The notes below the pieces were generated by a model. The model had not been told where the DNA came from, did no database searches, and saw nothing but the letters and a program-made list of their open reading frames with translations. From Phallusia mammillata (lineage: Eukaryota), in contig OZ281500.1 of NCBI GenBank assembly GCA_965637545.1, positions 6,510,001 to 6,574,000 of the forward strand: 64,000 bases of DNA. Direction: 5' to 3'. The translations under genes and the position numbers were made by a program. Of this stretch, positions 1 through 20,900 are shown piece by piece (positions within the stretch are counted from its first letter, which is position 1; the number at the start of each line of letters is the position of its first letter).

Positions 1-16
1 TTGTGTTATCTTGCAG

Positions 17-3000
17 CGCTTGCTCGAATACTGCAAGAGGAATTCGATCCGAATTTCGATCCAGTTTACCTTTGCCCATCCATACTCGTGGGATAATAAG
101 TACAATAAGGAAGGTTTGCAGAGTTTGTCCGAGAAGGGGATCAAGTTGAAGCCATTAAGGTACAATTTAGCAATTTCGGCTAAGTCAATAGACTCAATCT
201 GCGGAAGACTCGACACGGAGTAGCGGAATCCTTACTATTTATTGTTATTTTATTTTGAATCAAGAAACCATTATACCTGGGTCCTTTATTTTGTTTTATT
301 TTCAACAATTACAAGGAACAAACGTAGTGAAATGACAGTCAAATCCATGCTACAGGGAAAAGTAAACCTAGACGTAAGCTGTCGTGAGAAGCACAAATAA
401 TTTTCAATGAACAAGGTGTTGCTGGAACAGATTGTTTCTGGCAAAATATATGGCATATGATATGTCATGGCTCATATAAATGCAAAGATTTGTTCGAAAA
501 AGTTTGTTTCGTTTCATAACAAAAAAAATAATTTTTCGGTTCACCCTATTTTGGTGTCCATGTCGATGGTAACCCTGATATGTCTCCAACATCTTGACAA
601 GTTGAAATTGTCCACAAATATAAACCAAGAGGGTATTCCTTGTCACCTACACGACTACAATATACACCACACCTTCTGCAATCAAAACGTAACGTATTGC
701 ATTTATAGTCTTCAGCAAGGACTGAATCTAATGATCAACGATGTCCACGACACCCTGGAGACTTTCGACGAACTGCAAACGAGCAGAGGAACAATCCTTC
801 TCAATTATCACACACTGAAACGCGCGGCATCGAGACTGCGGGAAGCAGTGAATGTGAAAAGCGACTTCTATTTTCAGGACAACTTCGAACGTTTGAACGC
901 AATTTTAGGTAATGGTAAACTTGTGGTAAAAAATATAAATGCCATGTAGCTTGCAAATTAAGTTGGACCACAAAAAACAAGGGCTAGCCAGATCCACACT
1001 TTAGACCTCATTTCCCACCGGGTTTATGTTACCCGCTAGATAAGGTTTGCAGTAAACTGCCTGCAGTTTAAGTCAGTTTTTGAAAACCTGAGAAGCATAG
1101 AGGCAACCACAAAACTGCTGTGAAGTGGGAAACGTATTTATGCATGGTAGCGCAAAAACGTATTACCCAACAGTGGCCACAGGTGCGCCGCCAATAGCTA
1201 GTTAACCACTATAACGTTCCCGATATTTGTTTGTCACCGACAATGACTTAAGTACATACGTTATGGTTGAATTTTGTGCAGGTTACCAAAACCACCTACA
1301 CACACACACTTCAAGCTCAATTGAGGAAGCTACAAACTTTTCTTTGGCCACATACAGGGATTACTTTTTGCTACAAAACAGCGACGAGATTTGGGCAAAA
1401 TTAAAAGTCGACCTGACAAAGGACAGCGAAGGCGTAATGCGGGTGAGTATTTAGCTTTTTAACAAGTACTTACATAGGACTGTGGCTCACACATAACGAT
1501 AGACATGCAGTAACGAACCATTAAAACAAGTAATTTTTTCTCAAAGGAAGTAATTCACACAGTTACACAACAAACATGGCTTGTAAAACCTTTAGAAATA
1601 GATTTAAAAATCCAAAAACCTCAGCAATACAAATTTACTATGACAATATATTGTATATGCTCGAAACGGAAGGTTTGTGTTACAAAGCATGTTTACCATC
1701 CAGATGTTTTACCTTCCACATTTTTATAGGACCAAAAGCTATTCGAACGAATTTACAACGTACCAGGACCAAAATCGCCCAAGCATGGGAAGAACAATAC
1801 AGTGAAAGATCCACTGAACCCCAAAACTCATCTTCAACCGCTTGCTGACACGATCTGGCGTCTGGTGAGTGTTTGGTTGCGGTTTAGTAGAACATGAATA
1901 CAGATGATTGACATTTTGCTGACTACTGCTGTAATGTATTTATAACAACGCCTTTGAAATGTCCGTTTGCATTTTGTTTGTTGAGTTTAAACGCCTATTG
2001 AAACCATCTTGTAAGAAAATATTTTTTTAGGTGTCGAATTGGCATATTGTGGTTAATTTAACGTTGACAGAATTCCTGCTACAATTTAAAGCAACCTCAA
2101 AGGTCGACCAAAATAAAAGTAAACAACCCTACCCAGTGTAATTACACCTACCATTACAATATTTGACTTATATAAAGAGAAGCAATAAATGCGCTCTTTA
2201 CGATTTCGACAACGCATTAATAATGAATTCACAACACACTGTCGGTCCAGTGTGGTACAAAAATCGATCTTAACCTCGTTACTTTTAATCCAGATCGGCG
2301 ACAACGTCACCCTTGGCGAGCTCGCTAGTCAGGACGAGATAGTTGTTACCATCACTGCTGTTATGAGCGAATACCCGGACCGTATGAACTGGCACAACAC
2401 TGTACGGGCACTGCATCAAAAACTATCTGACAAAATTGAAGACGCCCATTTGGGAAAAGTAAGATATTAAAGTGCTATGTACTAGAATTACTTGGAGTTA
2501 GATATGGCCAAATACTTACAAACAGCTCATTGTTTACCCAGGTTTAACTTGTGATAAAATCTGTTGTAAAACAGAAAGATACACAATTCTTCCCCTGAAA
2601 TTTACATTGATTGCCCCTCTTTCCCACAGAATTTTTACGTATCTTCTTGCGTTAACCTTTTAATTCTTTCAAATCTTAGGTCCGCGTCGAAACACACATC
2701 CGTTACGCAATAAACCTCAAAGACAGCAACCAATCGCAACCGAGGGCAAAGGTCAACGGGGTCGCAAGCGGGGTCACAACTGAATGCATGCACGTGCAAG
2801 ATATCCTCTTCGACATGTTAGAAGACCTGGAAGACAATGTAAAGCACCTCGAAAGCGTGGACTTCGGAAGAGGAGTAAACCTTTGCGTGGACAAGACTTC
2901 TGTATCCTCGGCTCTCGGCGTCCTTAACAAAGCAATCAAGATACGAACAGGGGATGGAGAAATTCATTCAATGAACAGTGATTTTACTGACTGCTATGTC

Positions 3001-3018
3001 GAGAATTCTTTGGCATAA
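17..3018 (+). CDS. AID/APOBEC-like deaminase-fold gene A, 5'-partial, two tandem domains (D1 C-terminal half plus degenerate D2)
   Basis: Phase-consistent GT-AG exons 17-159, 709-908, 1282-1442, 1730-1864, 2294-2458, 2680-3018 (TAA). D1 reads RLLEYCKRNSIRISIQFTFAHPYSWDNKYNKEGLQSLSEKGIKLKPLSLQQGL, matching the alpha3-beta4-loop7-alpha4-beta5 pattern of AID/APOBEC (xIFxARLY...EGLRxLxxAGVxIxxM). D2 reads EEATNFSLATYRDYFL..EIWAKLKVDL..THLQPLAD..VTITAVMSEYPDRMNWHNTVRAL..VRVETHIRY..TECMHVQDILFDML. Confidence 0.7.
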
Positions 3019-3533
3019 ATACGCAGTTGGCGATAACGTATTTGTCGCCTACTTAAAATTAGAAGTCTCGTCTTGCTACCTAAACAGAATCACGCTCGCA
3101 CACACTTACGAAGTACATTTAAATTGCAACTCATGCGTTCGGTTAATGCAGTACTGTATTGCTATGTTATGTCTTTTGGTAGATCATTGAACGTGCATTC
3201 TAAAAACAACATTACAAGACCATATTATACAAGAATTGGACCAAAACAGTGCTCTTTTTGTTTTTCGTAACATTTGCAGTACAGTTTGACCATAAAACCG
3301 TAGTATATCCGAACAATGATTATGTGTCACAATTTTAATGTCCTCACACGTATTTTGCAAATACACAATATTGGACGTTTCGACAAACTTGTACATATTG
3401 CTTAACAAAACAGCGCTCAGCGCCACACAACGCAATATCCCGATTGCTAAATAATGCATAGGAAATTTGACCAATTTCTACCCCACTACTTTAATTAAAT
3501 GTTTTGAGCTATTTGTCAGCAAGCCGATCAGTC

Positions 3534-5510
3534 ATGAAAGTCTATTGCTGTCAACAGCACTGGGAAAACATGTTAAAGGTAGTTCAACCAGCCACAATTA
3601 GCCTGCATGAATATCTGGAATTCTTTCTCGAGACCCGAACTAGTGATGCAAATGCAAGCAGGATCATTGTTAAGTGCGACCTTGTGTATGACGGTCAGCT
3701 CAGGTATAAGAAAACATGATAAACAGCAAGCGGACCTAGGCTATTTTTCGAGTAATACGTTTATTAGCGTGTTTTTGTCACAGGTGCCGTTGCTTAACAG
3801 TATGATACTCTTTGGTGGGAAGGCCATTACCAAACAAATTTCATTGACTTCAAATTAGTAAACTATAACTTCATAAATCAATCAAGATATTTTAGGAGTT
3901 TAACCATTATCAATATGCAGCACAACATATAGCCAGAAAGCACATTTCGACGCCACTACAAATTACTTGTCGGTTTAATCAGGTTTAGCAAAGTCCTGCG
4001 AGGTGGAGAGAACAAGGGCGAAAACGCTGAACTTCAAGTGGCAAAAGATTTGAAGTCTATACTTACTGACGACCGGCCTTGGTCGAAAAAGGAATGCTCA
4101 GTAAACGTAAGTGGAGAGACCAAAATAATGCACTAAAACCGCAAAGGTAAAGAGCGGTTGTCAAAATAAATTTACTAGAGGAAAAAAATTCTGTGCGCAA
4201 AACAAAAAAATATTTTGTGATTGCAAAATAAAGACACTAGAACAACCTTAAAAACAAAAGTTCTGTCCGATGATTAAAGCGAAAAAAGCCTACTCACTCA
4301 TTTTCTCTACAATATACTTGTCTGTTTTTTTAGATAATCGTCAACAAAAGTCTCAGCATCATTAGCGCCGAGCAGTTCACGCAAGTTCATCGCCAGTTGC
4401 GAGCAAGGGTCGGAGCTGGCGCAGTGTTTAGGGTGTCGTACGCCCATCCCTGTCACTATGTTAACCAACGAGCTTTGACCAACCTCCATAGGGCTGGGAT
4501 TAAGCTGCAAGTGCTCGCGGTGGAAGATATACTCAGGGAAGCGATCAAAGATTGTCTCAAGCAAGTTTGTTTTTATTTTGCAAAAGCATTGTAGCCCACT
4601 ATTAGGACGAACGAAGTATTAAGTAAGAAAAGTGAAAAAGCTTTAGGTAACAAGAAAGGTAAAAACAGAGAAAAGAGTAAATAAAAATACACGCCAATGC
4701 ACTTGGCGTTACCTTTTTTGGTAAATCGGGTTGAGAGCACAAATCGGATGGAGTGTATCAATTTCGTTTCAATTTCATAGCGTTTATTTTATCATGGTAA
4801 TTTCATCGTAACAATTTCATCGCAGCAATTACATCGTGACAACACAGCAAGTTTGTCCCTTGTGATTATATCTTTGTGGTAATTTTAACCGGAAAGACAA
4901 ATTGACAGAGAGTATCAATTGACAACTCAAACTAAAAAAACCTGTCCAGATTCCTTTTACATTGTAAAAGTAAAATTTACAACATCATATGTTAATGCTA
5001 TCAGACGAAATCGGTTAATCAGGATAAAACGCAGTTGGAATCCCGACTAACCGGTTCGGGGCTTTTCACTAGCACGAAGTTCGTTCTTCATGTCCAACAA
5101 CAACGTTTTGCCTTAACTACACCTTAGTATCGTATAACGAGTCCAATCCATGTGCTAATAATAACGCGGCAACATAGCATCGAACTTAAATTAACTTTAC
5201 GAAATCTCACAAAAACAGCTCATGACTGGTAAAACTACGTACAATATCAATACTGTAATACATTTCCAGTGACGTGCAAGGCCTTGCCTATTTGTCGTTG
5301 CAAAAACTACGAAACGTATCAGTCACGTGCGACCAAACGACAATCAACGCAGCTCATTTTCTGCTACTGAATAGCTTCCAAGTAAACGCGACTTCCCTGG
5401 CCGAACACGTGATCAAGGGTAACTACGAACGAGATCAGTATGTGCTTGGACTTCGACAGGAAATGCGGAAGGTGGATCAAATCAAGTTAATCAACTTAGA
5501 ATGCCTTTGA
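3534..5510 (+). CDS. AID/APOBEC-like pseudo-deaminase gene B (single domain D3, about 273 aa)
   Basis: Exons 3534-3703, 3983-4106, 4334-4564, 5023-5078, 5270-5510 join in frame. Translation ATISLHEYLEFFL..RIIVKCDLVY..GENAELQVAKDL..IIVNKSLSIISAEQF..VFRVSYAHPCHYVNQRALTNLHRAGIKLQVLAVEDIL gives the full element order of the deaminase fold, with NAE in place of HAE and SLSIIS in place of SPCxxC. The ATG lies 14 nt after a 3' splice-type site at 3519. Confidence 0.72.
4799..4840. repeat. Three degenerate tandem copies of a 14-mer (AATTTCATCGTAAC) in an intron of gene B
   Basis: aatttcatcgtaac-aatttcatcgcagc-aattacatcgtgac. Confidence 0.6.
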
Positions 5511-6404
5511 AACTGCGTAACTGAGTGAAAATTTCTAAAGTCCTATACTAAATTAACCTCAAGACAAATCTTCTCAAAGTATAACTTTATCACGAGTCTA
5601 TACCGTATATAAACTAGCAATAGCCTATACTGTACAATGGATCGAGTTAATTATATAAAAAACAAGTCCAAAACAAGCTACACGTTAAGATTGAACACCT
5701 TCTAGAAACGTTTATGTACGTAAAATCCACAAATAACAAGACCCAGTTTGGCAACAATTTTTCAGCTTTTAAGAAGCAACAGCAAAACGAGATCACCGAA
5801 AGTGACCAGGAAAAATAAAGTCTCGTTTGATGCCAGTGAGGAAGATCAAAAAGACGAAATCATTACATCAGTCAGTCAAACACCCAGCAACAAAATGTCG
5901 AGTAATGTCAGCATAAGTAAAAAGTTTTCATCGATTTTATCAACTTTGTTTCACAGCGGTGCTGACATCTGGACCTACCGGAGCAACGACAAGTGAGGCT
6001 CTACATATGACCAAGTATTTGCTAAAGGCAAAGGAAACTAATAGACCGGAGATTTGCCTCGATTTTCAAACGTATCTGCAACTGTACTTGGCCTGTGGAG
6101 GTTAGTTCTTTATGTTCAGCTCCGAGATCAATTAAGTTACCTATTAATCCGGATAATGGCTAAAGTTTTATTGCAAGTTTAATCCAAACCGTGTAGCCTA
6201 CCATTAGTTAGAATAATATATCATTTATTTGCACATTCTGGTTCAAAACAAGAAATAAGATTGGAAAACTGGGTTTATCCATTATTGACTCAGATAACAA
6301 AAAAATGCCCGCTAGCTTTGCCTTTAAAGTTGATGGATCAACTTAAATACTTTGTCACTTATGTTAAGTGCCTTTCGAGAAAATAAAACGGACTATGTTT
6401 GCAG

Positions 6405-8111
6405 GAGTAACAAAAAATACAAAACCAAAGACCGTAGAAGGCAAGTGGACGATCGAATGTAGCGTAAGTAACTCTACATCAATGCTGCGATTCTCTGGCT
6501 TAACGTACAAGGGAGGCTGCGATGGAGACAACTCAAATATCAACAGCCCTGAACTGATAAAAGAAATCCAGGCTGCGTTGAAACAATACGGGGGTAAACC
6601 AAGAAAAACATGATCAAAATCTAAATAAACTGACACCAAACACTTGGATATGATAAGCTTTTGCGAATCATGGGTTATTTTTAGGCAAGCGTGAAATACA
6701 CATGAATGTGGAAACGATAGTGGCATGTATCCCGGACAGAAACAACAGCGTCAGGCAGATCACCGCTTTAGCTGAAAAGCTTAACAAGGATTTGAGAGGA
6801 AAGACAACAGTGTCGGTGTGGTAAGTCAATAATACTGTATTGTTGTAAAACTCTAACTTGAAATGCCCTAGATGTGGAGTGATTTCGTTTCTTTTTGCAT
6901 TGTAAAAACAAAGTTTTATGAAGTACTAAATTGGTTTACATCCCTAGTTGTAATACTACAACCTAAAATACGTGGTTAGGTGTGCTGGAGTGGAAAACAT
7001 GAACGTACCGACCCAACAAGCTATCAAGCGCATGTTTCAGTCGGACTCAAGTGGTCAAGTTGCCATAGAGAAACACCTGCGTGTTATGCATATCATTGAC
7101 ATATTAAACTTCATGGTAGACGACATACTGGTAAGAAAAAGCTACTTATTGTAAAAACCCACATGTTTTGAAACCAAGAATATTTTTTCTAGACCATGTT
7201 TACACACTACCACATGGCAGCGCATGAGCGTGGCTTGTCGATAAAGATTCGACCCGCGGAATTGACAACTGCTGTGCATTTGCTGCGTTCCGCTATGCAC
7301 GTTAGCAGCGATGAAAAGCCTTATTTAAAACATAGGTAAGTATAAAGAATATCTAGAACAGAGGTGGGCAACCTTTGTTACTGTGGGGCCAAATACAATA
7401 GCCAAAATTCGATCGCGGGCCGCACCTGTGTAAAACACAAGGTGATTTCACTTTGTTGCTTACCAAATATGCTTAACTACAAGTGGCATTCGCATTTGAT
7501 GCTAGCCACATATTGCCAGGTCGCATAAAAATAGCATCGGGCGCATTAATCTGCTCAAAAATATATAACAGTTGCTGCACTCGTTTGCCAGGACATTTGA
7601 AATCCAAGGGTCTCTGTGGGCCGCACAACCTTTAATCAAGGGCCGCATTTGGCCCGCGGGCTGCAGGTTGCCCACCCCTGATCTAGAAGATGTCTTGACG
7701 TTGGACTGTTTGAAAATAAACCTAATACGTCCGAATTAAAAAGAGGTAACCTGGTTAACTGTAATAACAACGCAACCAAGGCGTATTAGCCATTATAAAT
7801 CTCACTCAATTCACGTACAATTTAGACAACATTCATTTTAGCCTATATAGCTTAAAGGCATATCTTTCAAAATCCTGTACAGAAGGAAGTGAAGGTCCAG
7901 TTTAAGAAAGTAAAAAAACATGGTCTTTTAAGTATACCACTAGAAACACATGAAGACCCGATTTTTAAGCTAATTTGATTGCAGATTGGAAGATCACAAC
8001 GCACACGAACGACTTCGTGATTCTTACCATCAAAACAAAAGCGCTCTGCTCGCCAAGAACCTGCAGCCAACCGCACAAGAACGGCATCCCAGTGACAATA
8101 AGCTTGTTTAA
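6405..8111 (+). CDS. AID/APOBEC-like pseudo-deaminase gene C (domain D4); 5' exons unresolved, may start near 5895
   Basis: In-frame exons 6405-6593, 6685-6820, 6980-7130, 7193-7335, 7985-8111 (TAA). KWTIECSV..NSPELIKEI..VETIVACIPDRNNSVRQITALAEKL..LRVMHIIDILNFMVDDIL..ERGLSIKIRPAELTTAVHLLRSAMHV..AHERL aligns by eye with D2 (SEYPDRMNWHNTVRALHQKL; TECMHVQDILFDMLEDL; GRGVNLCVDKTSVSSALGVLNKAIKI). Candidate upstream exons 5895-5916, 5957 onward and 6294 onward could not be joined in a single consistent phase. Confidence 0.62.
7359..7680. mobile_element. Non-autonomous hAT-type MITE (322 bp) in the last intron of gene C
   Basis: TIRs CAGAGGTGGGCAACC / GGTTGCCCACCCCTG (14/15 match); perfect 8-bp TSD ATCTAGAA at 7351-7358 and 7681-7688; internal GGGCCGC subterminal motifs. 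Confidence 0.9.
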
Positions 8112-8186: not shown

Positions 8187-8248
8187 GATCAAATATACGT
8201 GATCAAATATAAATGTAAAATGTCTTCGGCGTGATCAAATATAAATGT
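8187..8248. repeat. Short direct duplication between the convergent gene C and HMMR
   Basis: CGTGATCAAATATAAATGT at 8198-8216 and 8230-8248, plus a partial GATCAAATATA at 8187. Confidence 0.75.
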
Positions 8249-8301
8249 TGTCTATATGATTCTGTCTGTAAAAATGGAAGATATAATATAACTGAATGTA
8301 C

Positions 8302-11300
8302 CTGGAATGTTCTTCTGTCTTTTCGCTTAAGTCCTGTCGGAGAGATTCTACGATAGAGTTGGCTTCTTTCAGCTTGTCCACATAAGACAACAACTCAGAT
8401 TTCATATGGCTGTAAAATACCATTGGTTGTGAAGATGTATAAAAATACAGAAATAAAATAGCTCTTTTGCGGACAACCCACGTTTGTTTTGCTTCACATT
8501 CTTCGTGGTTCGATTTGAAGCTTTGAAATTCTTGAAGTAATTTGTCTTTTTTCTTTTCGACAGATTTTCTGAAAGGGAAGGTTGAAATGATGTTTTCTTG
8601 CCAAGACGTTATTTCCTAACCGAATGGTAAAATTTTACGAATTTGAATGCCTGATACTTACAATTAAAGAAATATTTGTACAGTGCTAGGTATATACTAA
8701 CTTTTCAACAACGTGGTTCACAACTACATCCGAAAGTTTTGTGATTTTCGTGTTGGCATTCTCTACTCTCTCGACTTGTGTATCGAGTGCATCGTTGACG
8801 TTCTGTTAAGAAATTTAAAATGCCAATAATTTTACTTTTTACTCATTGACTTTAGACTGATTTGTATAAAACCAATTTATGTGTCAAGGCGTGCTAAATC
8901 TTACAAGCGTTGAGAATTATTGTTACCTTTAATTTATTCTCGTAATCGCTTATAATTGTAGCAAGTGCGGCATTTAAAGTCTCGGCGAACTTCGATTCGT
9001 ACGATTTTAGTTTGGCATCCGAACAATGCAAATCATCTTGTAATCTCGCGTTATCAGCTCGCAACTTGTCCGTCACACCTGAAAACGTGAAGTAATTACC
9101 AGATAATTTTAAGTACGAGTAAAATTGTAGTGAAAGTTGATGTTATACCTTGAAGTGCACTGATTTGTTGGCCTACGTCATCACTGTGCTTCTCAATGTC
9201 CTGATTTAGTTCCTCTAAAAAACAATTTATACGAAATATTACTTACAACACTGCTGTTTTTGTTTTCTTTTGCAAAAACAGCGGAAATTGGATCCGTGTT
9301 TAAAGCTTGTGACAGCAATGGGTTTCACATTGTTTTTCTTTGTGGTAATTTTGTGGTGGTACTAAATACCACATGATACCGCATCTTGCAAGATTCGAGT
9401 GGGGGTGAGGGTTTGTAATTAAAATACCACTATGTGACTACAATTTGGTCTCATTTACCTTTGTTGGGACTGATATTCTTACATTCCATAAACCATGCAT
9501 CAAATGGTAACGTCCGGTATTTAGAACCACTCCGAATTTTGTACTCACCCAAAACAGAGTTTGCCTGCTGCAAAGCTGCTATCCTTGCTTTTGACGCTGT
9601 TACATCAGTTTCAACACTTTGCATTCTGATGCGGTCTCTTTCCAGTTGCTGGAACAGTTCAAAACATAAATGAATGTAAAAACTATATTTTTAGTTAGGA
9701 AACATATCATAACCAAACCAGACACAAACCAAACTAAGAATCGCTTTGCTATTCATCGCAGTTCTACACTGTTGCATCATATGCATACACCATCATCCAT
9801 AATTGACATTTTGATATGCACATGTATTCGTTATGTCCATGCAACTGCCTATATCCTATCCTAGCATCAATATGGCATGGTTGTTTGATAAAAAAACTAT
9901 GCCAACAGGACAGCATGCAATTGCTAAGTTAACCATTACCCTTTCGAAACTGTTGGATAATGAGCCCTTATTAGCATGTTTTAACATCAAGCAGCATTAA
10001 CCATCAAAATTATACAAAGCGTTGGTCTCACTTGGCCAATGTTTAACATAAGCATATAGAGTGGCAACTGCTAATAGTTAATATTATGCCACTAATGTAC
10101 TACCCAAAAAAATGCCATAATCCAATAAACATTTTAGGATAAAAACCTGAGTCAGAGTAGAATTTTTCCCTCTGAAGGAAACCCATAATTTTGTTGCAAA
10201 AAACTGTTGCAAAGATATGTATTTACCTGCTTATATGTTGTTAGCTGAGATTTGGAACGCTTTAAATCTAGTTCCAGGTCATTATTTCTCTTCTCCTTCA
10301 CCTCCTGTGACAGATTTATGTTTTGGTATTGTATATGCCATGTTTGTGACTTTGCGCTTCAAAATGTGCATGTTACAAAGTACAAACCTTGGTCATCAGA
10401 AAATCATTCTTCTTTTGCAGAGCAGCAATGTTTTTTTCAGCAACTTTTATTTCGCTTCCAAGTGAAAGTTTGTCTTTTGATAGTGAAGTGACTCTGCCCT
10501 CCAATCTTGCTACTTCTTGACGACTGATTTTTAAATCTTTTTCACGGTCACTGCATTGTTGCAAAAGCTGTCGAATCTAAAGAAACACCACAACTGTGTT
10601 GTTTATGTATAGTAAACAAATCAATATGGTACTGCAGCTAAAAAAATATGGCATATAAGTTTGCTACAGTTTATATACATGTGTCAGTCACTTATAAACG
10701 AGATGCATGTGTATAAAATGGACAGAGCAAAACATAAATGTGTGCCAGCACATCAGTGTGAAAGTTGGCATACAAAAGTTCACCTCTTTTTCATAAGCTT
10801 GTTTTTCCTTGTTTACACCTTTTGGGGATGCTTTGATAGTGGTTGCTTTAGATTCTCTCTTGCTATTCTGTAACAAATCATGCAACAGAGCATTGGATTA
10901 ACCACTGTTTCTGCATAATTGAACTTTTTTTACATTTTCCTAAAAAATGAATCTTGATATCAAACATATTGACAAAGACACCCCTAACATTCTAATTTGT
11001 TGGTAAGAAATCATGATGGTAACAAGGTAAAGTTACATTGAGTGATGCAGGCCCATTGAAATTGAGTTTCTTCTTTGATGAGGTGATACTTTCTGGGGCC
11101 ACAAACACATCAGAATTCCCATCAGTTGATGTTGTTGATTCCGGTTTAAATCTGTCAGTGTAGTTTTCAAACTTTAGCACTCCAAATGTTTTTTCCTTCT
11201 CAGAAAGTGTATATTGACCAGGGGCTGGACCGGAACCTAAAATATACACAAGCAATTGAAGGTTCATTTAGACACAAGAAATTGTAGAACATAGGATTAG

Positions 11301-11651
11301 TTGTAGTCAAAAAAGTATTTAGTGGTGAATCAAAAATCACTTAACAAATATAATATATATATATACATAGGTTTAAACAGGGCTTGACAAAACCAATGCA
11401 ATTTGTCGATTGCAACAGCAATTTGATCCTTTAAAAGGCCGTGAGGACTATGATGCCAGGTTTAAAACAAGTGATGCCATGAAACGGGAATCTGAACACA
11501 GGGTACTCATTTAATGCTGCTCACAGTGGTCATCAATGTGATCAGGAAAATTGTGTATTTGTTGAAAATCTCTAAAATTGAAGGAATCATTTTAATCACC
11601 CTTACCTGCATTATCATTGAATCTTTTAATAGCAGCTTTTGGAAAAGACAT
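8302..11651 (-). CDS. HMMR: Hyaluronan-mediated motility receptor / RHAMM, N-terminal about 403 aa (11 exons)
   Basis: Begins MSFPKAAIKRFNDNAGSGPAPGQY (human HMMR from memory: MSFPKAPLKRFNDPSGCAPSPGAY), then EKEIRQLLQQCSDREKDL..LQKKNDFLMTK and coiled coil. Exons 11651-11606, 11236-11037, 10867-10784, 10576-10388, 10304-10227, 9648-9549, 9214-9149, 9078-8927, 8802-8702, 8568-8482, 8409-8302 are all phase-consistent. The last exon either uses a phase-2 donor at 8301 or reads through to a stop at 8235-8237. Confidence 0.9.
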
Positions 11652-12943
11652 TGTAAAACCAAATGTCAGCAGTTTTAAAATATGATGCTGCAAAATAGGT
11701 TTCGGTTCTATATGGTTAACATGCTTGACTGGATGATGCAATCAAAGAATTTAATCAAACTAAAGCATTAATAATCGATATGCTTATGTTAGGTTGGTCA
11801 ACATTCTTTGTAAAATAATCTGGCCCCAACCCATGTTTTTGTTCGAACCCTAATAACCCTTTACTTGTTTTTCTTTTTTGCTGAACTAAACTCCTGCTTC
11901 CATTGATTCAGCATTTCAGTATCTTACAAATTTAATTCATACGCTATATATAGTGTATACAAACTATATGCAATGTATAGAAACTAGGCGTCTTGTACCA
12001 ACGCGACCAGGGCAAACCGCAGAAAAAGGGTTCCAGCAAACACACAAAACATCGCATATATTTTGTTAAAAAACAGGTAAAAAGGTGAAATTTCACACCT
12101 GTACAGCTGTACTAAGTCGAGCATGCAGAATGGTGGGGGTAAGTGATAAAAAACACTATAATTTAATCTCAGATACCCCTTATGGTCTTAATATTCTTGA
12201 GGGTGGTTTGCGTATTCCTGAAACTGCGTAGTTTGCGTAGATTGTGTATTTTAGAGTAGCCCTCTTGTAAATACTTCCTTAGCCAAAATGCAATTTACTC
12301 GTTAAATGCGTCAATGTAAATCATTTACATGCAAAGTCATAGCACGTCTTATGACACTAATGGAAAAAGTGTATACTGTCCAATACAAAAAATCGACCTA
12401 TAAAGTCTAATCAAAAACTTAAAATCCAAACTTTAGTCCAAAACTTTAAACTCTAAAGCTATACTAGTTTCATTCATTGCTGACTGCAACAGCTTCTCAG
12501 TTGCATGAATCGGCATTTTAACGTCATGGCAAATTTGAATAATAGAGTGCAGTCATACAAAATCTTTTAAGACAACATTTGTAAGCAAAAAACAGTAAAA
12601 AAAACGCTAGTGTAATAAAGAGTCTCAATCAGCAACCGCAACAAACGAATTATATTTTTGAAGAATTCCCGCTGAACGTGAAAACTTGTTTTTCGAATCA
12701 GTGTGAAACTATAATTTTTTTTTCGGGGAGTGGTTGACAAAAATGTCCAACAAATGTCACATTTAATTTTTGTTTCAATTTAAATAGTTCAGTAGCATGC
12801 ATAACTTCGCATACAAAAATAGACTTTTCAATTGTATTTCTATGCTGCTGTTATAATACTACGCTACTTATTGTGGTTTTGGTCCATGTTTTAAGTAGGT
12901 TGAGTTTGTTTCGCTTGGTGAAAGAACACATAGCTACACAACG

Positions 12944-13375
12944 CAGAGTTGCAAGTCGGGCCGGGCTTTACGGGCCGGGTTCGGGTTCGGGCCGGGTTCG
13001 GGCCGGGTTCGGGCCGGGTTCGGGCCGGGTTCGGGCTTAGGTATTTATGAGAAAACGGGCCTAAAACGGGCCTGACTTTACGTTCCGTTTCCGCCATTTT
13101 TTAGTAACTATTCTCTGGCTTTGACCTAATGCCCACCTTGCTTTAAAACGTATTGTTTACCCCATTGTCTACTATTGTTCATTGTGTTTGTTGTCTTTTT
13201 TTCTCATCCTTTGTTGCGAGGCTTTCGTGGATAGGCCTGTCAATCAAAATTTCGGGCCTAAACGGGCTTCGCAAAAACGTTTCGGGTCCGGGCCGGGCTT
13301 CGGGCTTATACTTTCGGGTTCGGGCCGGGTTCGGGCCGGGTTCGGGCTCAGATTTCGGGCCCGCTTGCAACTCTG
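12944..13375. mobile_element. Non-autonomous hAT-type MITE (432 bp) with G-rich subterminal tandem repeats
   Basis: TIRs CAGAGTTGCAAG / CTTGCAACTCTG; perfect 8-bp TSD ACACAACG at 12936-12943 and 13376-13383; tandem CGGGCCGGGTT units near both ends. Confidence 0.9.
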
Positions 13376-14209: not shown

Positions 14210-14904
14210 TTATGTCCTTCTCCTTCTTACAAATTTAACATTCCTTCCGGAATCTGCAAGTTCAGGATAAAGGTCCGCATCGAACGCAAATTCGACCGTC
14301 CACGTGGAAAGGGAACCACGCGAGAGAATCTCCTGTCTCTGTCTCTCATTCCACATTGTTTTTAGACCTTGTTTGATCTTAGCCTTTTCACGTGACCACG
14401 CATCCACCTCTGCCCTTCGTAACGCTTCACTTGCCACGCGATCACGCTCCACTTCTTCCGAGGAGTAGTCACTGTGACGTGATGACGTGCCGGAATTGAC
14501 GTAAAGAATTGTTATGACCGCATAACCGGTTTCAACGCGGATTTGTTTTTGATTCGTCGAGACCACGATTGGAGCATCACTACCACCAGGTGTCGCAGCA
14601 GTGCTACCACGACGTTGGGGATTTCCACCGTCAAGAATTCGGTCGTGGCCCGAAACAAGCCGTAGAGTTTGCTTGTCTTTTTCGAAAGAGTCAGGCGACT
14701 TGGCGAGGAAGACATTCGGTTTCCCTTCCAAGGTCAAGCTCATGGCAGCCGATGCTGAGTCAGCGTCTTTACCGAATATGACGTCAGCACCCTTAATGAT
14801 GCCACTAAGACGCTTTACGTCATCGGTCGCCGAGTTAAGCACTTGTGTAGCGATGCTACCACGGTCCACAATAAGCACGAGGCCTTGTGCAAACAGGGTT
14901 CCGT
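14210..14904 (-). CDS. TENM: Teneurin terminal exon: Tox-GHH / TCAP region
   Basis: EALRRAEVDAWSREK..WNERQRQEILSRG..LYPELADSGRNVKFVRRRRT-stop. Confidence 0.93.
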
Positions 14905-17900
14905 CTGAAACAAACAAATTTTAATGTTGAGAACAGCTCTATACCAATAGTGTTTCTTAAACAACGTAAACTATTATAACACTGATCAGACGTATATAAT
15001 TCATATACCTGGAATTACATCTTTTTCGTTTTGCATTTGACGAGTGGGCACAAGTACTGAAGGTGTAACTGTCTGGAGACTCATGTATGCCCTCAAGTGT
15101 TGAGAAAGCTGGCACTCAACGCTTGACTTGTCCTAAACCAAATGCTTTGTTAAACAAAAGGTAAAAAGCTTGCTATTACACTTGCTTAAACAGGCATTAC
15201 AACTTAAAGATTAAAATTTATTACATTTAAAACATGTAACTTATTTCGACAGAATACAACGTACCTTTTGTCTTGAGGCAATCTGTGGGTCTGGAGCAAC
15301 GTTCTGAAGCTTAAACCCGAGTGCAGTCAACCAAGACGAGGTATCGGTCATGTGATTAAACACTGGCACAGGGTTTACCGGGTCGACAACTTGGAAAGCA
15401 GTAAAAACAACGAGTTCTGTTCCAAGGTCTTTCAGTCGGTAAACTCCCGATGACGTCAGCTGACCCACTATTGCGTCATAATCAACTGCTTGCTGTAGCT
15501 GCCCTGTACTTTTTTCACGACTGGAGCTTTGGCCAAGGACCGAGTCCGGTGTGATCTTGGGCGCCGATAGTGGCGATAAGGCTTCGCGATTTGCAAACCG
15601 AACTAGGCCGGTAGTGACATCATATATGCCCCCGCGGAAGCCAATGGCGACAAAGAGGGAGGGTTCAGAATCATGCAGAACTTGTCCGAATGGTGAATAC
15701 CTAAAACAACATTTTTGCATTAAGTTTCTTTGCAGAAGTTTCGACCTGTTGCCTGAACATGTCAACCGGACAATCGGATTTGCTCAGTATGATATTACAC
15801 TTACTTTATTCGCTTCACCATCTTCATTCCGCTGTTAAAAACTCCGATCGGTGACCCCATATGGTCACAAACGATTGACCAGACCTGACCGTCGCTTCGT
15901 TCCATAGCGAACAAGTGACCTTCAACGTCATATCGGTACGTTGTGATGCGATCTGCGAATGCAATGTGCGTTAAAACCTGTTTCTGAATCAAATGCTTTA
16001 ACGTTGAAATTGTTGGACAGGGTACAGATTTTTACTTACGGGAAGTTGCATTAAATGTGTGAGTAAGGCGATCCGGTTTCGCAAGATCAGCGTATAGGAA
16101 TCGAATCACTTCCCCTGTACGGACATTCACTCTTGTTGTGAGGCGACCGAAACCATCATACGCATATTTGATCTGTTGATTAAAAAAATGAAATAAATTT
16201 TGAAATACAAACTGACTGTACTAGGGATTTTACGTTGTTTGTTGATTAATTACCTCATAAGCGTCGTCTAATCTGTATGCGGTGGTCAGATGGCCCATGC
16301 TGTCGTATTCGAATACCTCGTTGCCTCTTTGCTGCAGGAAACCGTCCTTGTCAAAGCGGTACTGCAAGTCTCCGCAAGACGTCAATCTATTACAAAACCA
16401 TTCCTCAATATTTTGCAAGTTAAAACAATATACATTGGCAAGACATTGTAAAAACGCTACAAATTGATATTCTGTACTATTAACGTTTCCTTAAAGGATT
16501 CTGTTTTATGCAATTGATCACCGAAGTATCTTCACCTTCCATATTTGTCGTATCTCAGTGTCGTTAACACCCCGTTTTCTTCAATCTTTGAAAGCTTGCC
16601 ATCAGCGTCGTAGGTGTAACGCCACTTAGTGGTTCCATCAATGGCACACGACTTGAGTTCGCCTTTGCTTGTGTAGCTATACCCGACAGTAGTCACGTTG
16701 TCATCCAGCCCACTGACTGTAAGCAAGTCAATTCGTCCAGCCTGGTCATAGCTGATTCCAAGGTTATAAATTGGAGCCCTAATGAAAGAAATAAGCAGTT
16801 TGAAATATAGCCTAGGAACGATAAAATAAATGCTGTAATTTCCTGCAATTGTTACAACCAATGCGTTTTACCCATAAAGTGGATGATGAAAATATAGTTA
16901 TGCCTGATTAACGTACCGAAACATGTAAAGGCTGACACCAGTGATCCTGCCACTGTTTTGGGACTGCTTAGAAAGAGTTACAGTGTCTGTGCTGATTGTG
17001 TAGATCTGGTCGAAGTCGATGACCTTATACGGTCCGAATGTGGTTAACTTGCCCGAAACATCGTCGTAACTGTAGAACTCCTGCGGCAGTCTAGTTCCGT
17101 TTACCTTTACCTAGAGAACAAAACGCAATGTAAAAATGTGACCAAACTTCCGTAGAACTTGTATATATGTAATAAAATCGTTGCAATAACTGCATTTTTT
17201 ATGAGTGCCTAATTTTAGTCAAATACCACTTTGATCTATCAGAGCTTTATGTAACATTTACCTGAATACTGTCCAAACGCAAATTCACGTCGTTAGTGTA
17301 ATCAAACACGGCAAGTAGGCCGCCATCGGTCGATGACGTTACTGTATGACGTTGCACCAGAGGTCCATTCCTGTGAAAGCGTAGCGTACATCGGTCAGTG
17401 CTCACGGACACGATTTCTCCCGATTGAGGATCGCGCAGCATACTGGTGCGTGTGCCGTCATGCAGAACCTCGGTCATGTGACCGTGCGCGTCATAGCGAA
17501 ATATGCTTTTGCGTTTCTCACCTATAAGAAAAACCATAAGTCAAGAAGGTTGCACAAATTTTTACATTGTTAAAGTCGTTGTTTACCAGGATAGTAAACA
17601 GCCAGGGGACTTCCATGGTCATTGTTGTCCAGCACCAACATGTCGACGCCATCGGCGCCGATAAATGTCGTCCGAACGAAACCAATGCCGATACGTCGGT
17701 CAAGCGTGTATGTTAGTCCTGATGGCAGGGTCAGTTTGTGTAAGTTGCTGCTTCCGTCGTATGCAAAAGTAAAGTGGCCCGTGGAATGGGGTGGAATCAT
17801 GCGCGCCATCTAGTAAAAAATATAAGTAAGGTTACTTTTTGGATGCACACTGGTAAAGACTTTAATGTGGCAGTTATAATTCGAAATATTCTAACCAAAC

Positions 17901-20900
17901 CTGTTGGCAAACATGATAAAATAGCCCTATTGCGGTTTGATTAAATTGACAACTTACTAAATTTCCATATGTATAGCGCCAGGTGTTGCCATCTGGTGTG
18001 CGCACACTCTGCATGTTGCCGCTAGCGTCGTAAGTGATGTGTTCGGTGTGACGACCTCGTTGCCACGTGCTCGCGTGACCTTTGGGGTCATAGGTTACGT
18101 TTACAGGGCTTATAACGTTGTTTGGCATCCAAAGGGTAGGAAGTCCCCGATCGTTATACTGGAAATGTCCAAAAGATTATAGTTAACCTCCATACAACTT
18201 ATAACTGGAAGGTACAAAACTCGATAGGTTTTCGTGCAACATTTTACCCGTTGGTATTTAGGATTTTACCTGGACGCGAAGCATAAACTTGGCATGATCG
18301 TCATAAATCTTCTCCATTTTTAAAGCTTGAGAGTAATCCAATGAAAGGATGTTTCGCCCGTTAACAGCCATTCGTCTTCCTAGAAGGAACTGACTGGTGT
18401 GGGAACCAGATCCTAAAAAAATCGATTGAGTAAAACTGTGGATTTTCTAGCAAGGAATGTGGATAAACTCAGGATCTTACCGGCATCCTTCTCTTTTCTT
18501 GTTCTCCAGACGATCTCATTTTCCAAGGGGTCCGATGGAAGACGGATTGTTCTCTTAGCGAGGAAGGGTGCGGTCAGTCCTAAGACTGGATGCGGTTTTG
18601 TCTCCAGAATCAAATCGGAATCGTCAAGGTAGTGCACGGAAATAGAATTGTCAGTCCATCGCTTGTATGTCGTCATCATTGCACCTACAAATAGAAAATG
18701 ATGCTAAATTCAATTCTTGAAGGTTCTACTAAGCGGGCATTTCGATTTTGTCGATTTTGGTGAATTTTGATAGGTTACTGTGACCAAAAAGGGATATAAC
18801 CTTGAAAACAAAACCAATACAAGCTCTGTACGTCCAGTCAGTATATTCAATAAAGATATGACTAAGTTTAAGACTGTTGTTGGTACACCAGTCACAAACC
18901 TTCAGTGGTTGTAATTAGATCACATAGGTATCCAGGCTCGGTGCTGATCACAACATCACGACGCCCAACTCCCATTTTAGTCGATCCCGCCGATGTCGCA
19001 GCTGTTTCGATGGTGACCGTGTACCGGGTAGCGTTGACGCTGCGATGCAATGACGTCATCGAACCGGTTGGCGAAACCGCGGTGATGACGCGTCCGTAAA
19101 CGTCATAGATGTAGAACGACGACGCATAACGACCGTAAACGCTGGACAATATAAGACCACTGTCTTCGCTTTGGTAAGTGAATGCCGCGATTGGAGTTGC
19201 TGAGTCTAAACAGGGAAAAAATAATGTCAATTCTGTCTTGAAATTTTTAGAGCTATTTTTTCGCTGTATGTGTTATTTGTTACCTTGGACGATTCTGGTG
19301 ATATCTCCATCCCTGTTGACTGTTAGCCCAAGGTTCTGTCGGTTTGGCAAGGCGATCTGGAAAGGTCTCTGAACACACACAAAATAATGCAAATTAATTG
19401 CTATAGCAAACACTTTTCATTAACAGCAGATTCGTCTAGCACAATATTAACACTTTAAAAGTACACAAAAAAGTACTAGTGCACAAAATTTTATCGAGTA
19501 TGTTCTCACCCCGCTGGCATCATAATCAATTTGAAGCCGATTGCCATTCACATCACGGATCACGTGGAGTCGACCACGTGTTGTATAGGCAAAGTTGTAG
19601 AGCAATGATCCGGTGATGACGTTGCGGGTTTCCACGTGGCGACCATCGCGGTTAAATACGTACAGCTGATTGGCGTCCGGGTTGGCCACGTGATACTCAG
19701 CGCGGGAGTTCAGGGAAGGTAAGGAATGCACCACCTAAAATAAAGGACGTTTTTTTACCAGACAGCTTTTGAAGCAAAATTTAGTTTTAGACATTAAAAA
19801 GCTAACCGAATTAAACAAACAATTTGACAGCAATCAAACTAAGGCATACTTATGTAAAACGCGAATGTCCGAGTTGAACTTGAACCAATATTTTTTACAA
19901 CCTACTTTTCGAATTCGAAGATTCAATTGGTCAGCGATGTACACGCTGCCATCAGGTGTCGCTGTAACTGCGGTTGGATTGTGTAGAGAAGCACTGCGTG
20001 CAAAGTTGCCATCGCCAGAGAAGCAGTTGCACTCCTGAACTGCGCAATCACACTTGGAGTCGACACCAGCTATGGTGGAAATGCGCCCGCTGAAATAAAC
20101 GTATCCAAATTGTTTTAGGTTGAAACAGTAGAACTTGTGTTATGAGTGCTGTGAGTGTAGTGTGGTGGTGTTTTCGTATCTAATATATGCAACGTGCAGA
20201 CGTCGTATTGTCTGTCTGCAAAAGGAAGAGGCGCCTAAAATCTGTGTATCAATCTAAACGAGTGATAAAACAATATAGGTTTTACAACTTCCACATAAAA
20301 GTCGATATCCGTTTTATGATTACATATACAAAATCAATATTAAAGAAAGCAACTCCCACGCTAAATTCACCTGTAAGGATCCACCCTTCTGACTCTGTGG
20401 ATAAACTTTTGATCCGACTCGGCAATGATAAGTGCGCCATCTGCTGGTGAAACTGATATCGACGTTGGTGAGATAAGGCTCACTTTTCTGGCATCGCTAA
20501 ATTAAATAGGAAAAAAATTAAACTCTGTTTTTAATTAATATTTTTACCAAAGTAAAAAACGAACCGATCGTCTGGATTCTTGGCTACAGCCCTTGTGCAG
20601 TGTACCGGAACGCCAGCTGCTAGCGAGGCGTGACGTTGAGTGACGTCAATACGTACCACCACGTCACCATCAAGTACGTAAAGCATGTCATCCAAATGAC
20701 TGATGGCCAACCCAGTGGGAAATGTGAATTCGACCTAAAGATGTGACTTGTATTAGAAAACCCTTACCATTAAGTTTAAATCTGTCATATATATTTTTTC
20801 CCGTCTAAAAGATAACGAAAAATTAGAAAAATCTTTCTATAGGTTGAAATCTATCATAGATAGTGTTTCAGAATGAATTGGGTTTATACCTGGTCTAAGC

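Follow-up and report, generated by a model that had tools for sequence, protein, structure and literature searches.

The main text of Krishnan et al. 2018 (PMC5889660) predicts that urochordate AID/APOBEC deaminases (AADs) are catalytically inactive, with Ciona intestinalis named among the repeated inactive versions, and assigns those of tunicates to a clade of invertebrate proteins and not to APOBEC4. The same text proposes a non-catalytic binding role for inactive AAD copies, and describes the metal-chelating insert of APOBEC4 as two Cys and one His from loop 1 together with one Cys from loop 3. Here we report on an AID/APOBEC-like locus at the start of a 64,000-nucleotide stretch of Phallusia mammillata DNA (assembly GCA_965637545.1, contig OZ281500.1, positions 6,510,001 to 6,574,000), hereafter the window. 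Our reading, to which we give a probability of about 0.8, is that the locus holds two tandem paralogues nested in HMMR which encode zinc-less, double-module AID/APOBEC-derived proteins, and that these proteins would act as non-catalytic binders. The initial annotation of this DNA had put the locus forward as the best candidate for an undescribed system, a standing it loses to the inactive Ciona and urochordate AADs already presented in that main text. A tunicate origin, an AAD domain, predicted inactivity and Ciona orthology were all found here, and the locus is neither a new defence system nor a new enzyme but a further member of the published inactive tunicate family.

Results

Gene count and exon structure

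The locus consists of two tandem paralogous genes on the forward strand, gene B (from the window start, with its 5' part cut off, to ~3350), which encodes the domain units D1 and D2, and gene C (3570-8111, 11 exons, 580 aa), which encodes D3 and D4. The host DNA has 34-45% G+C and short GT-AG introns. Three spliced genes carrying four repeats had been proposed by the initial annotation; the four domain units are present, and each motif quoted for them was found on the forward strand where it had been placed (FAHPY and NKEGLQSLSEKGIKL in exon 17-159, FSLATYRDYF in 1282-1442, ISLHEYLEFF in 3570-3703, YAHPC and NQRALTNLHRAGIKL in 4334-4590), but the number of genes comes down to two. D1 and D2 form one protein, because the spliced contigs described below carry the upstream sequence and the full-length orthologues (496-572 aa) are collinear, while D3 and D4 belong to one gene in Ciona and probably here as well.

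Gene B is one gene with exons at 17-159, 709-908, 1282-1442, 1730-1864, 2294-2458 and 2680-3018, its earlier D1 exons lying to the left of the window. The exon at 17-159 (acceptor ending at 16, donor GT at 160) is the last core exon of D1, contains the end of alpha3, beta4, loop 7 (FAHPY), alpha4 and beta5, and is 79% identical to the Clavelina orthologue. The alpha5-alpha6 exon of D1 (the linker, 709-908) was placed by an RNA contig end and by orthologue identity (58% to Clavelina), and the same stretch forms helices at 189-254 in the AlphaFold2 (AF2) model of the orthologue. D2 begins in 1282-1442 with helix 1 (FSLATYRDYF), beta1 and beta2, and this helix was aligned to helix 1 of D1 and D3 by hhalign. 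It continues in 1730-1864 with a lysine/proline-rich loop of low pLDDT and a helix, with no HxE, and in 2294-2458 with a strand (IVVTITAVMSEY), PDRMN at the PCxxC position (from the hhalign mapping) and a long helix, a stretch modelled at pLDDT 80-86 in the orthologue. The last exon (2680-3350) holds a strand, a disordered insert and the alpha5-hairpin-alpha6 tail of D2, with the stop codon at 3016-3018 and a 3' untranslated region reaching to ~3343-3350.

Contigs from four runs of two studies were placed on window positions 1201-7200; the runs are labelled 'RNA?', and intron-less contigs are what transcripts give. These contigs skipped 1443-1729, 1865-2293 and 2459-2679, with GT..AG at every skip and all three D2 joints seen, and ended at 3252-3350. 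They also extended 716-861 nt 5' of 1282, and the last 30 nt of this extension were those of window 877-906, so the exon was taken to end at 908. Orthologues read KLKPL-S-FQQG across the window donor at 160 and acceptor at 708, from which we infer the junction 159>709. At position 3132, in the 3' untranslated region, the window and both contigs of one study carried C and both contigs of the other study carried T, most simply a polymorphism.

A phmmer search with the D1 exon against 1.84 billion proteins gave, among the matches checked, two true homologues of 496 and 572 aa, the shorter being Ciona intestinalis LOC100182559 ('uncharacterized protein'); three further matches were rejected as bacterial Ig/PKD-repeat proteins. 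A further homologue of 526 aa was observed in Clavelina lepadiformis. The gene B protein shares 57% identity with its Clavelina orthologue, 48% with that of Ciona and 40% with the third. No match came from a homology search with the D1 alignment (142-451 aa range), and a search with Ciona LOC100182559 aligned with all gene C exon translations returned only two gene B orthologues. The homologues found are ascidian only and the adjacent teneurin is distant from vertebrate teneurins (E 1e-14 over 235 aa), in keeping with the non-vertebrate chordate suggested by the initial annotation, and public records label the proteins 'uncharacterized', much as it had expected them to be called hypothetical.

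The gene C model was built from Ciona tblastn matches and splice sites. With the open frames of the window as tblastn queries, the D3 and D4 exons were observed in the same order in Ciona, just downstream of Ciona gene B. Three exons (3570-3703, 3983-4106, 4334-4590) encode the core of D3, with NAE at HxE, LSIIS at PCxxC and YAHPCHY in loop 7; their order is kept at the Ciona locus (L001), to which they are 55-69% identical. The alpha5-alpha6 tail of D3 (5270-5471) has its Ciona counterpart at L001 14972-15173 (35% identity) and aligns to the gene B linker. This exon had earlier been read as helix 1 of D4; the real D4 helix 1 is ICLDFQTYLQLYL in 5957-6100. Between D3 and D4 lies a low-complexity spacer (5766-5901), which matched Ciona L001 15291-15420 by tblastn and has on its 3' side a 55-nt intron common to the window and Ciona. 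D4 and its tail occupy six exons (5957-6100, 6405-6593, 6685-6820, 6980-7130, 7193-7335, 7985-8111), with the stop codon at 8109-8111 ending the last of them.

The complete model is open for 580 codons with GT-AG at all junctions; aligned with our Ciona model over 562 columns, it shows 41% identity (E 1e-142). The annotated Ciona product is 423 aa with no Pfam hit. Its first residue is a Met internal to the D3 core exon, which leaves out the first two exons and half of the D3 core (L001 14034-14682); our Ciona model counted from that Met is 422 aa, and the Ciona annotation looks 5'-truncated. An AG acceptor was also observed 5-12 nt 5' of the gene C start codon in both species (window 3553-3569, Ciona L001 14024-14033), in the window ~200 nt after the end of gene B, which would fit a putative trans-splice acceptor or a putative short 5' exon.

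Family assignment and fold

Translated window positions 2-220 matched Pfam APOBEC4 (PF18775) with 40.4 bits and E 3.5e-10 (cut-off 27.2), NAD1 and APOBEC_N matching more weakly, and D1 thus passes the profile check foreseen in the initial annotation. The window exon and three orthologues all exceeded the PF18775 cut-off (40.4, 81.4, 39.4 and 45.3 bits), and D1 orthologues also exceeded that of PF08210. A PDB sequence search with the D1 exon gave marginal matches to APOBEC3F; a designed PPR protein in the same search was set aside as spurious. Nothing significant was found in Pfam and PDB sequence/profile searches with D3 itself.

The AF2 model of D1 plus linker from the Clavelina orthologue, calculated from five alignment rows only, reached pLDDT 72 and pTM 0.72, and showed the element order a1-b1-b2-a2-b3-a3-b4-a4-b5-a5-a6 with a five-stranded sheet. 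All of its 50 best PDB matches in Foldseek were APOBEC3, AID or APOBEC2 (E down to 5e-9), with target TM 0.6-0.73 for single-domain targets, while ESM Atlas returned AID, APOBEC2, APOBEC3, cnidarian APOBEC4-like and APOBEC4 clusters. The APOBEC matches from both searches span nearly the whole 258-residue model. We firmly predict, on the strength of the orthologue model, that D1 keeps a complete APOBEC fold, and assign D3 to the AID/APOBEC fold by its homology to D1 (hhalign 97%, E 1e-10; D3 core exon against the D1 profile in a second hhalign implementation 92%, E 6e-7).

The model of D2 plus tail from the orthologue was of lower quality, with pLDDT 55 overall and 80-86 in the core. This core contains helix 1, a hairpin, a helix and two strand-helix units, giving four confident strands. 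Its 50 best Foldseek matches were again all AID/APOBEC, but at E 2e-4 or weaker and TM 0.25-0.39. D2 had no match in Pfam in three species, and in ESM Atlas no match by features and no family by shape. The AID/APOBEC fold that the initial annotation claimed for D1-D4 therefore holds for D1 and D3 and is plausible but weaker for D2 and D4; likewise, structure prediction with Foldseek gave the full APOBEC fold for the D1 orthologue, and for D2 a weak match with TM below 0.4.

Relations between the modules

D2 and D4 matched each other in hhalign (94.7%, E 6e-8), and the combined D1 and D3 profile matched that of D2 and D4 (97.5%, E 6e-12), with reversed or column-shuffled controls at 2.5% or less. 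The tails (alpha5-hairpin-alpha6) of D1/D3 and D2/D4 also matched (95.6%, E 1e-8). The strands between helix 1 and the tail showed no significant sequence similarity between the two sets in hhalign, and the sequence signal linking the N- and C-terminal modules is confined to helix 1 and the tail. Judged from these profiles, genes B and C are paralogues of the same architecture, in each of them a module of core plus helical tail has apparently been duplicated internally, and D2 and D4 are quite likely degenerate deaminase-derived modules. The initial annotation had assigned beta4, loop 7, alpha4 and beta5 within D2 and D4; hhalign instead maps this stretch to beta3, the PCxxC position, alpha3 and beta4, a mapping that is not secure.

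Zinc site

The D1 units of three orthologues carry P-S-N-x-G at the PCxxC position (SPSNxG aligned to SPCPEC of APOBEC3F) and T-A-D, S-L-D or N-K-N at the HxE position, the latter placed via the start of helix 2. In D3 the PCxxC position reads L-S-I-I-S in the window and P-S-I-I-S in Ciona, and the HxE position reads N-A-E in both, D3 alone keeping the catalytic Glu. P-D-R-M-N in D2 and P-D-R-N-N in D4 stand at the PCxxC position, and neither domain has a His or Glu match at HxE. His/Cys/Cys zinc ligands are thus absent from the visible window domains and from D1 of the three orthologues, and the HxE and PCxxC elements named by the initial annotation are positions whose own residues occur in no visible domain. 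All domains lack the zinc ligands, and therefore deamination by the mechanism of the family would not occur; we predict that neither the gene B nor the gene C product is catalytic, and catalysis in the editing role once proposed for these proteins is not expected.

Loop 7 of D3 reads H-P-C-H in both species (window 4440-4460, Ciona L001 14700-14720), where D1 has H-P-Y/F-S. A putative neomorphic metal site in this loop is conceivable.

Genomic setting

HMMR lies on the opposite strand and encloses the APOBEC-like gene or genes in both Ciona and Clavelina. In the window, 5' exons of HMMR were observed on the minus strand within 8235-11669 (e.g. 8924-9079, 9544-9651, 10385-10585, 11604-11669), collinear by tblastx with the HMMR exons of both species, and Pfam HMMR_N matched at 10373-10564 with E 2.9e-5, below the Pfam cut-off. 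By synteny, the window gene pair is almost certainly nested antisense in an HMMR intron, with the 3' HMMR exons expected to the left of the window. Candidate HMMR exons in the last intron of gene C (7350-7700) were rejected, having only weak matches on both strands, in several frames and at several Clavelina places (Clavelina locus L002, 16823-17441); the similarity looks like a shared repeat.

Gene C was not detected at the Clavelina locus, between gene B and the 5' HMMR exons (L002 14915-20862), even at E 20, and appears to have been lost or moved there. The duplication that gave B and C is older than the split of these ascidians. A local, lineage-specific expansion had been suggested for this locus, but the same two-gene arrangement nested in HMMR is found in Ciona, and gene B also in Clavelina, the mark of an old and stable pair.

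Beyond HMMR, the last exons of a teneurin gene were observed on the minus strand at 14210-19230 and further, with a C-terminal open reading frame of 235 aa at 14210-14917; vertebrate Teneurin-2/3/4 structures are distant from it (E 1e-14 to 1e-9) and fly Ten-m is weaker. Between HMMR and teneurin, blocks of an 11-nt tandem unit (CGGGTTCGGGC-like) were observed at 12971-13051 and 13304-13362, flanked by 20-nt inverted repeats, and the region that contains them (12944-13375) may be a small mobile element or a satellite.

Discussion

Each gene would give an intracellular protein of ~500-580 aa with two AID/APOBEC-derived modules, each made of a core and alpha5-alpha6. The full APOBEC fold would be kept by D1 and D3, the N-terminal modules of genes B and C, and D2 and D4, the C-terminal modules, would be degenerate copies. 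Without a zinc site the proteins would be unable to deaminate by the family mechanism, and they may instead bind single-stranded nucleic acid or partner proteins non-catalytically. Such predicted binding of nucleic acid or protein appears to us the most likely role because of the fold, the conservation and the precedent of non-catalytic APOBEC3 domains.

Several points weigh against this reading. The inactivity of window D1 is inferred from the three orthologues, the N-terminal half of the domain with its HxE and PCxxC positions being outside the window, and the structure models cover only D1 and D2 of an orthologue. In gene C, the one donor that joins in frame to the conserved acceptor at 5270 is weak (GTAGCC at 4591) and overlaps an in-frame TAG at 4592; when other junctions from 4334-45xx to 5270 were enumerated, none had two good splice sites. 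No contig in the four runs covered 3400-7200, so that confirmation of the exons by RNA, which the initial annotation had looked to, extends to gene B through its spliced contigs and leaves gene C without transcript support in that interval. Finally, comparison of the D1/D3 core with the D2/D4 core by hhalign aligned 19 columns, all in helix 1 (30%, E 5e-4; best shuffled control E 0.044).

The weak donor that overlaps a stop codon and the empty contig interval would both suit separate D3 and D4 genes, with D3 stopping at the TAG at 4592 (~172 aa) and D4 either transcribed by itself or not expressed. We regard this arrangement as somewhat improbable, if a real possibility, since a single annotated Ciona product of 423 aa unites the D3 core exon with those downstream, the 11-exon window model stays open and matches its Ciona counterpart over the whole length, and a D3 module would be incomplete without the alpha5-alpha6 tail encoded by 5270-5471.

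The short core alignment bears on a second alternative, namely that D2 and D4 do not derive from a deaminase, a helix-1 motif and a helical tail having been duplicated or recruited around an unrelated alpha/beta domain. The silence of Pfam on D2 in three species and the failure of ESM Atlas to match D2 by features or to a family by shape point the same way. This origin is nevertheless unlikely: homologous elements flank the D2/D4 core on both sides in the order seen in D1/D3, all 50 top-ranking proteins in the Foldseek search with the D2 model belong to AID/APOBEC, an unbiased VIA search was rich in cytidine-deaminase-fold and JAB proteins, and S-x-x-P-x-x-x-G after the central strand is common to D1 and D2.

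That the proteins are active, locally expanded editing or defence deaminases, as first proposed, perhaps with non-canonical ligands in D3 (loop 7 HPCH plus NAE), is very improbable, for although D3 retains the Glu of HxE, its H-P-C-H is conserved between the window and Ciona, and neomorphic metal sites in AAD loops are known from the main text of PMC5889660, none of the three zinc ligands occurs in any visible domain or orthologue D1, the locus is a conserved pair with no expansion, gene B is as similar to its orthologues (48-57%) as the neighbouring HMMR exon is (47-63%), with no sign of arms-race turnover, and the same main text predicts inactivity.

Two zinc-less, double-module proteins from one nested gene pair are the reading that we retain. 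A broader proposal, which we advance tentatively and hold as possible though doubtful, is that a stable pair of zinc-less double-domain AID/APOBEC pseudo-enzymes, nested in HMMR, is maintained in ascidians by purifying selection on a non-catalytic function, for example nucleic-acid binding or that of a decoy, and that profile annotation has missed the second domains and the whole second paralogue. If true, the pseudo-enzyme pair may inform the origin of the vertebrate AID/APOBEC4 lineages. With the window, another ascidian confirms that only 'dead' AID/APOBEC-like proteins are present in the invertebrates most closely related to vertebrates, and the pair is a defined one in which the function of a zinc-less APOBEC fold can be tested in the tractable Ciona.

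Comparison with known systems

The closest described protein is Ciona LOC100182559, the gene B orthologue, which is collinear with gene B at 48% identity, occupies the same place in HMMR and shares the AID/APOBEC fold without zinc ligands; the window belongs to another ascidian species, nearer to Clavelina (57% identity overall and 79% in the D1 exon). The Ciona sequences meant in Krishnan et al. 2018 (PMC5889660) are presumably the same as LOC100182559. The main text of that paper, as distinct from its supplement, contains no degenerate second domain, gene C paralogue or HMMR nesting, and our literature search found no other paper mentioning the locus. The anatomy added here, and missed by annotation, is the two-module architecture, gene C itself (its Ciona product having no Pfam hit) and the conserved position in HMMR.

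Vertebrate APOBEC4 (PF18775) is the top Pfam family for D1 in all four species, and deaminase activity is likewise undemonstrated for APOBEC4, but it keeps HxE and PCxxC and has a single domain. The APOBEC4 metal insert was not found in D1: loop 1 has no Cys in Clavelina and in the third orthologue, the two Cys in Ciona are not conserved, and loop 3 is a variable disordered insert. The label 'APOBEC4-like' is thus a matter of Pfam score ranking only, because the tunicate clade is a different one in the main text of PMC5889660 and the loop-1/loop-3 insert is not conserved; the resemblance to APOBEC4 noted in the initial annotation survives as a best Pfam match and fails at the metal insert. APOBEC2 is similar as a slowly evolving AAD with undemonstrated deaminase activity, and differs in keeping a complete zinc site in a single domain.

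The double-domain APOBEC3 proteins (A3G, A3F, A3B, A3D) also have two AAD domains in tandem on one chain, of which one is non-catalytic and binds RNA or protein, and they gave the best structural matches of both D1 and D2. The duplication observed here is independent of theirs, its second domain is structurally reduced, and both domains are zinc-less, whereas the inactive APOBEC3 domains keep zinc. The binding role that we propose for the gene B and gene C proteins would nonetheless resemble that of the non-catalytic N-terminal domains of these double-domain APOBEC3s, or that of APOBEC2.

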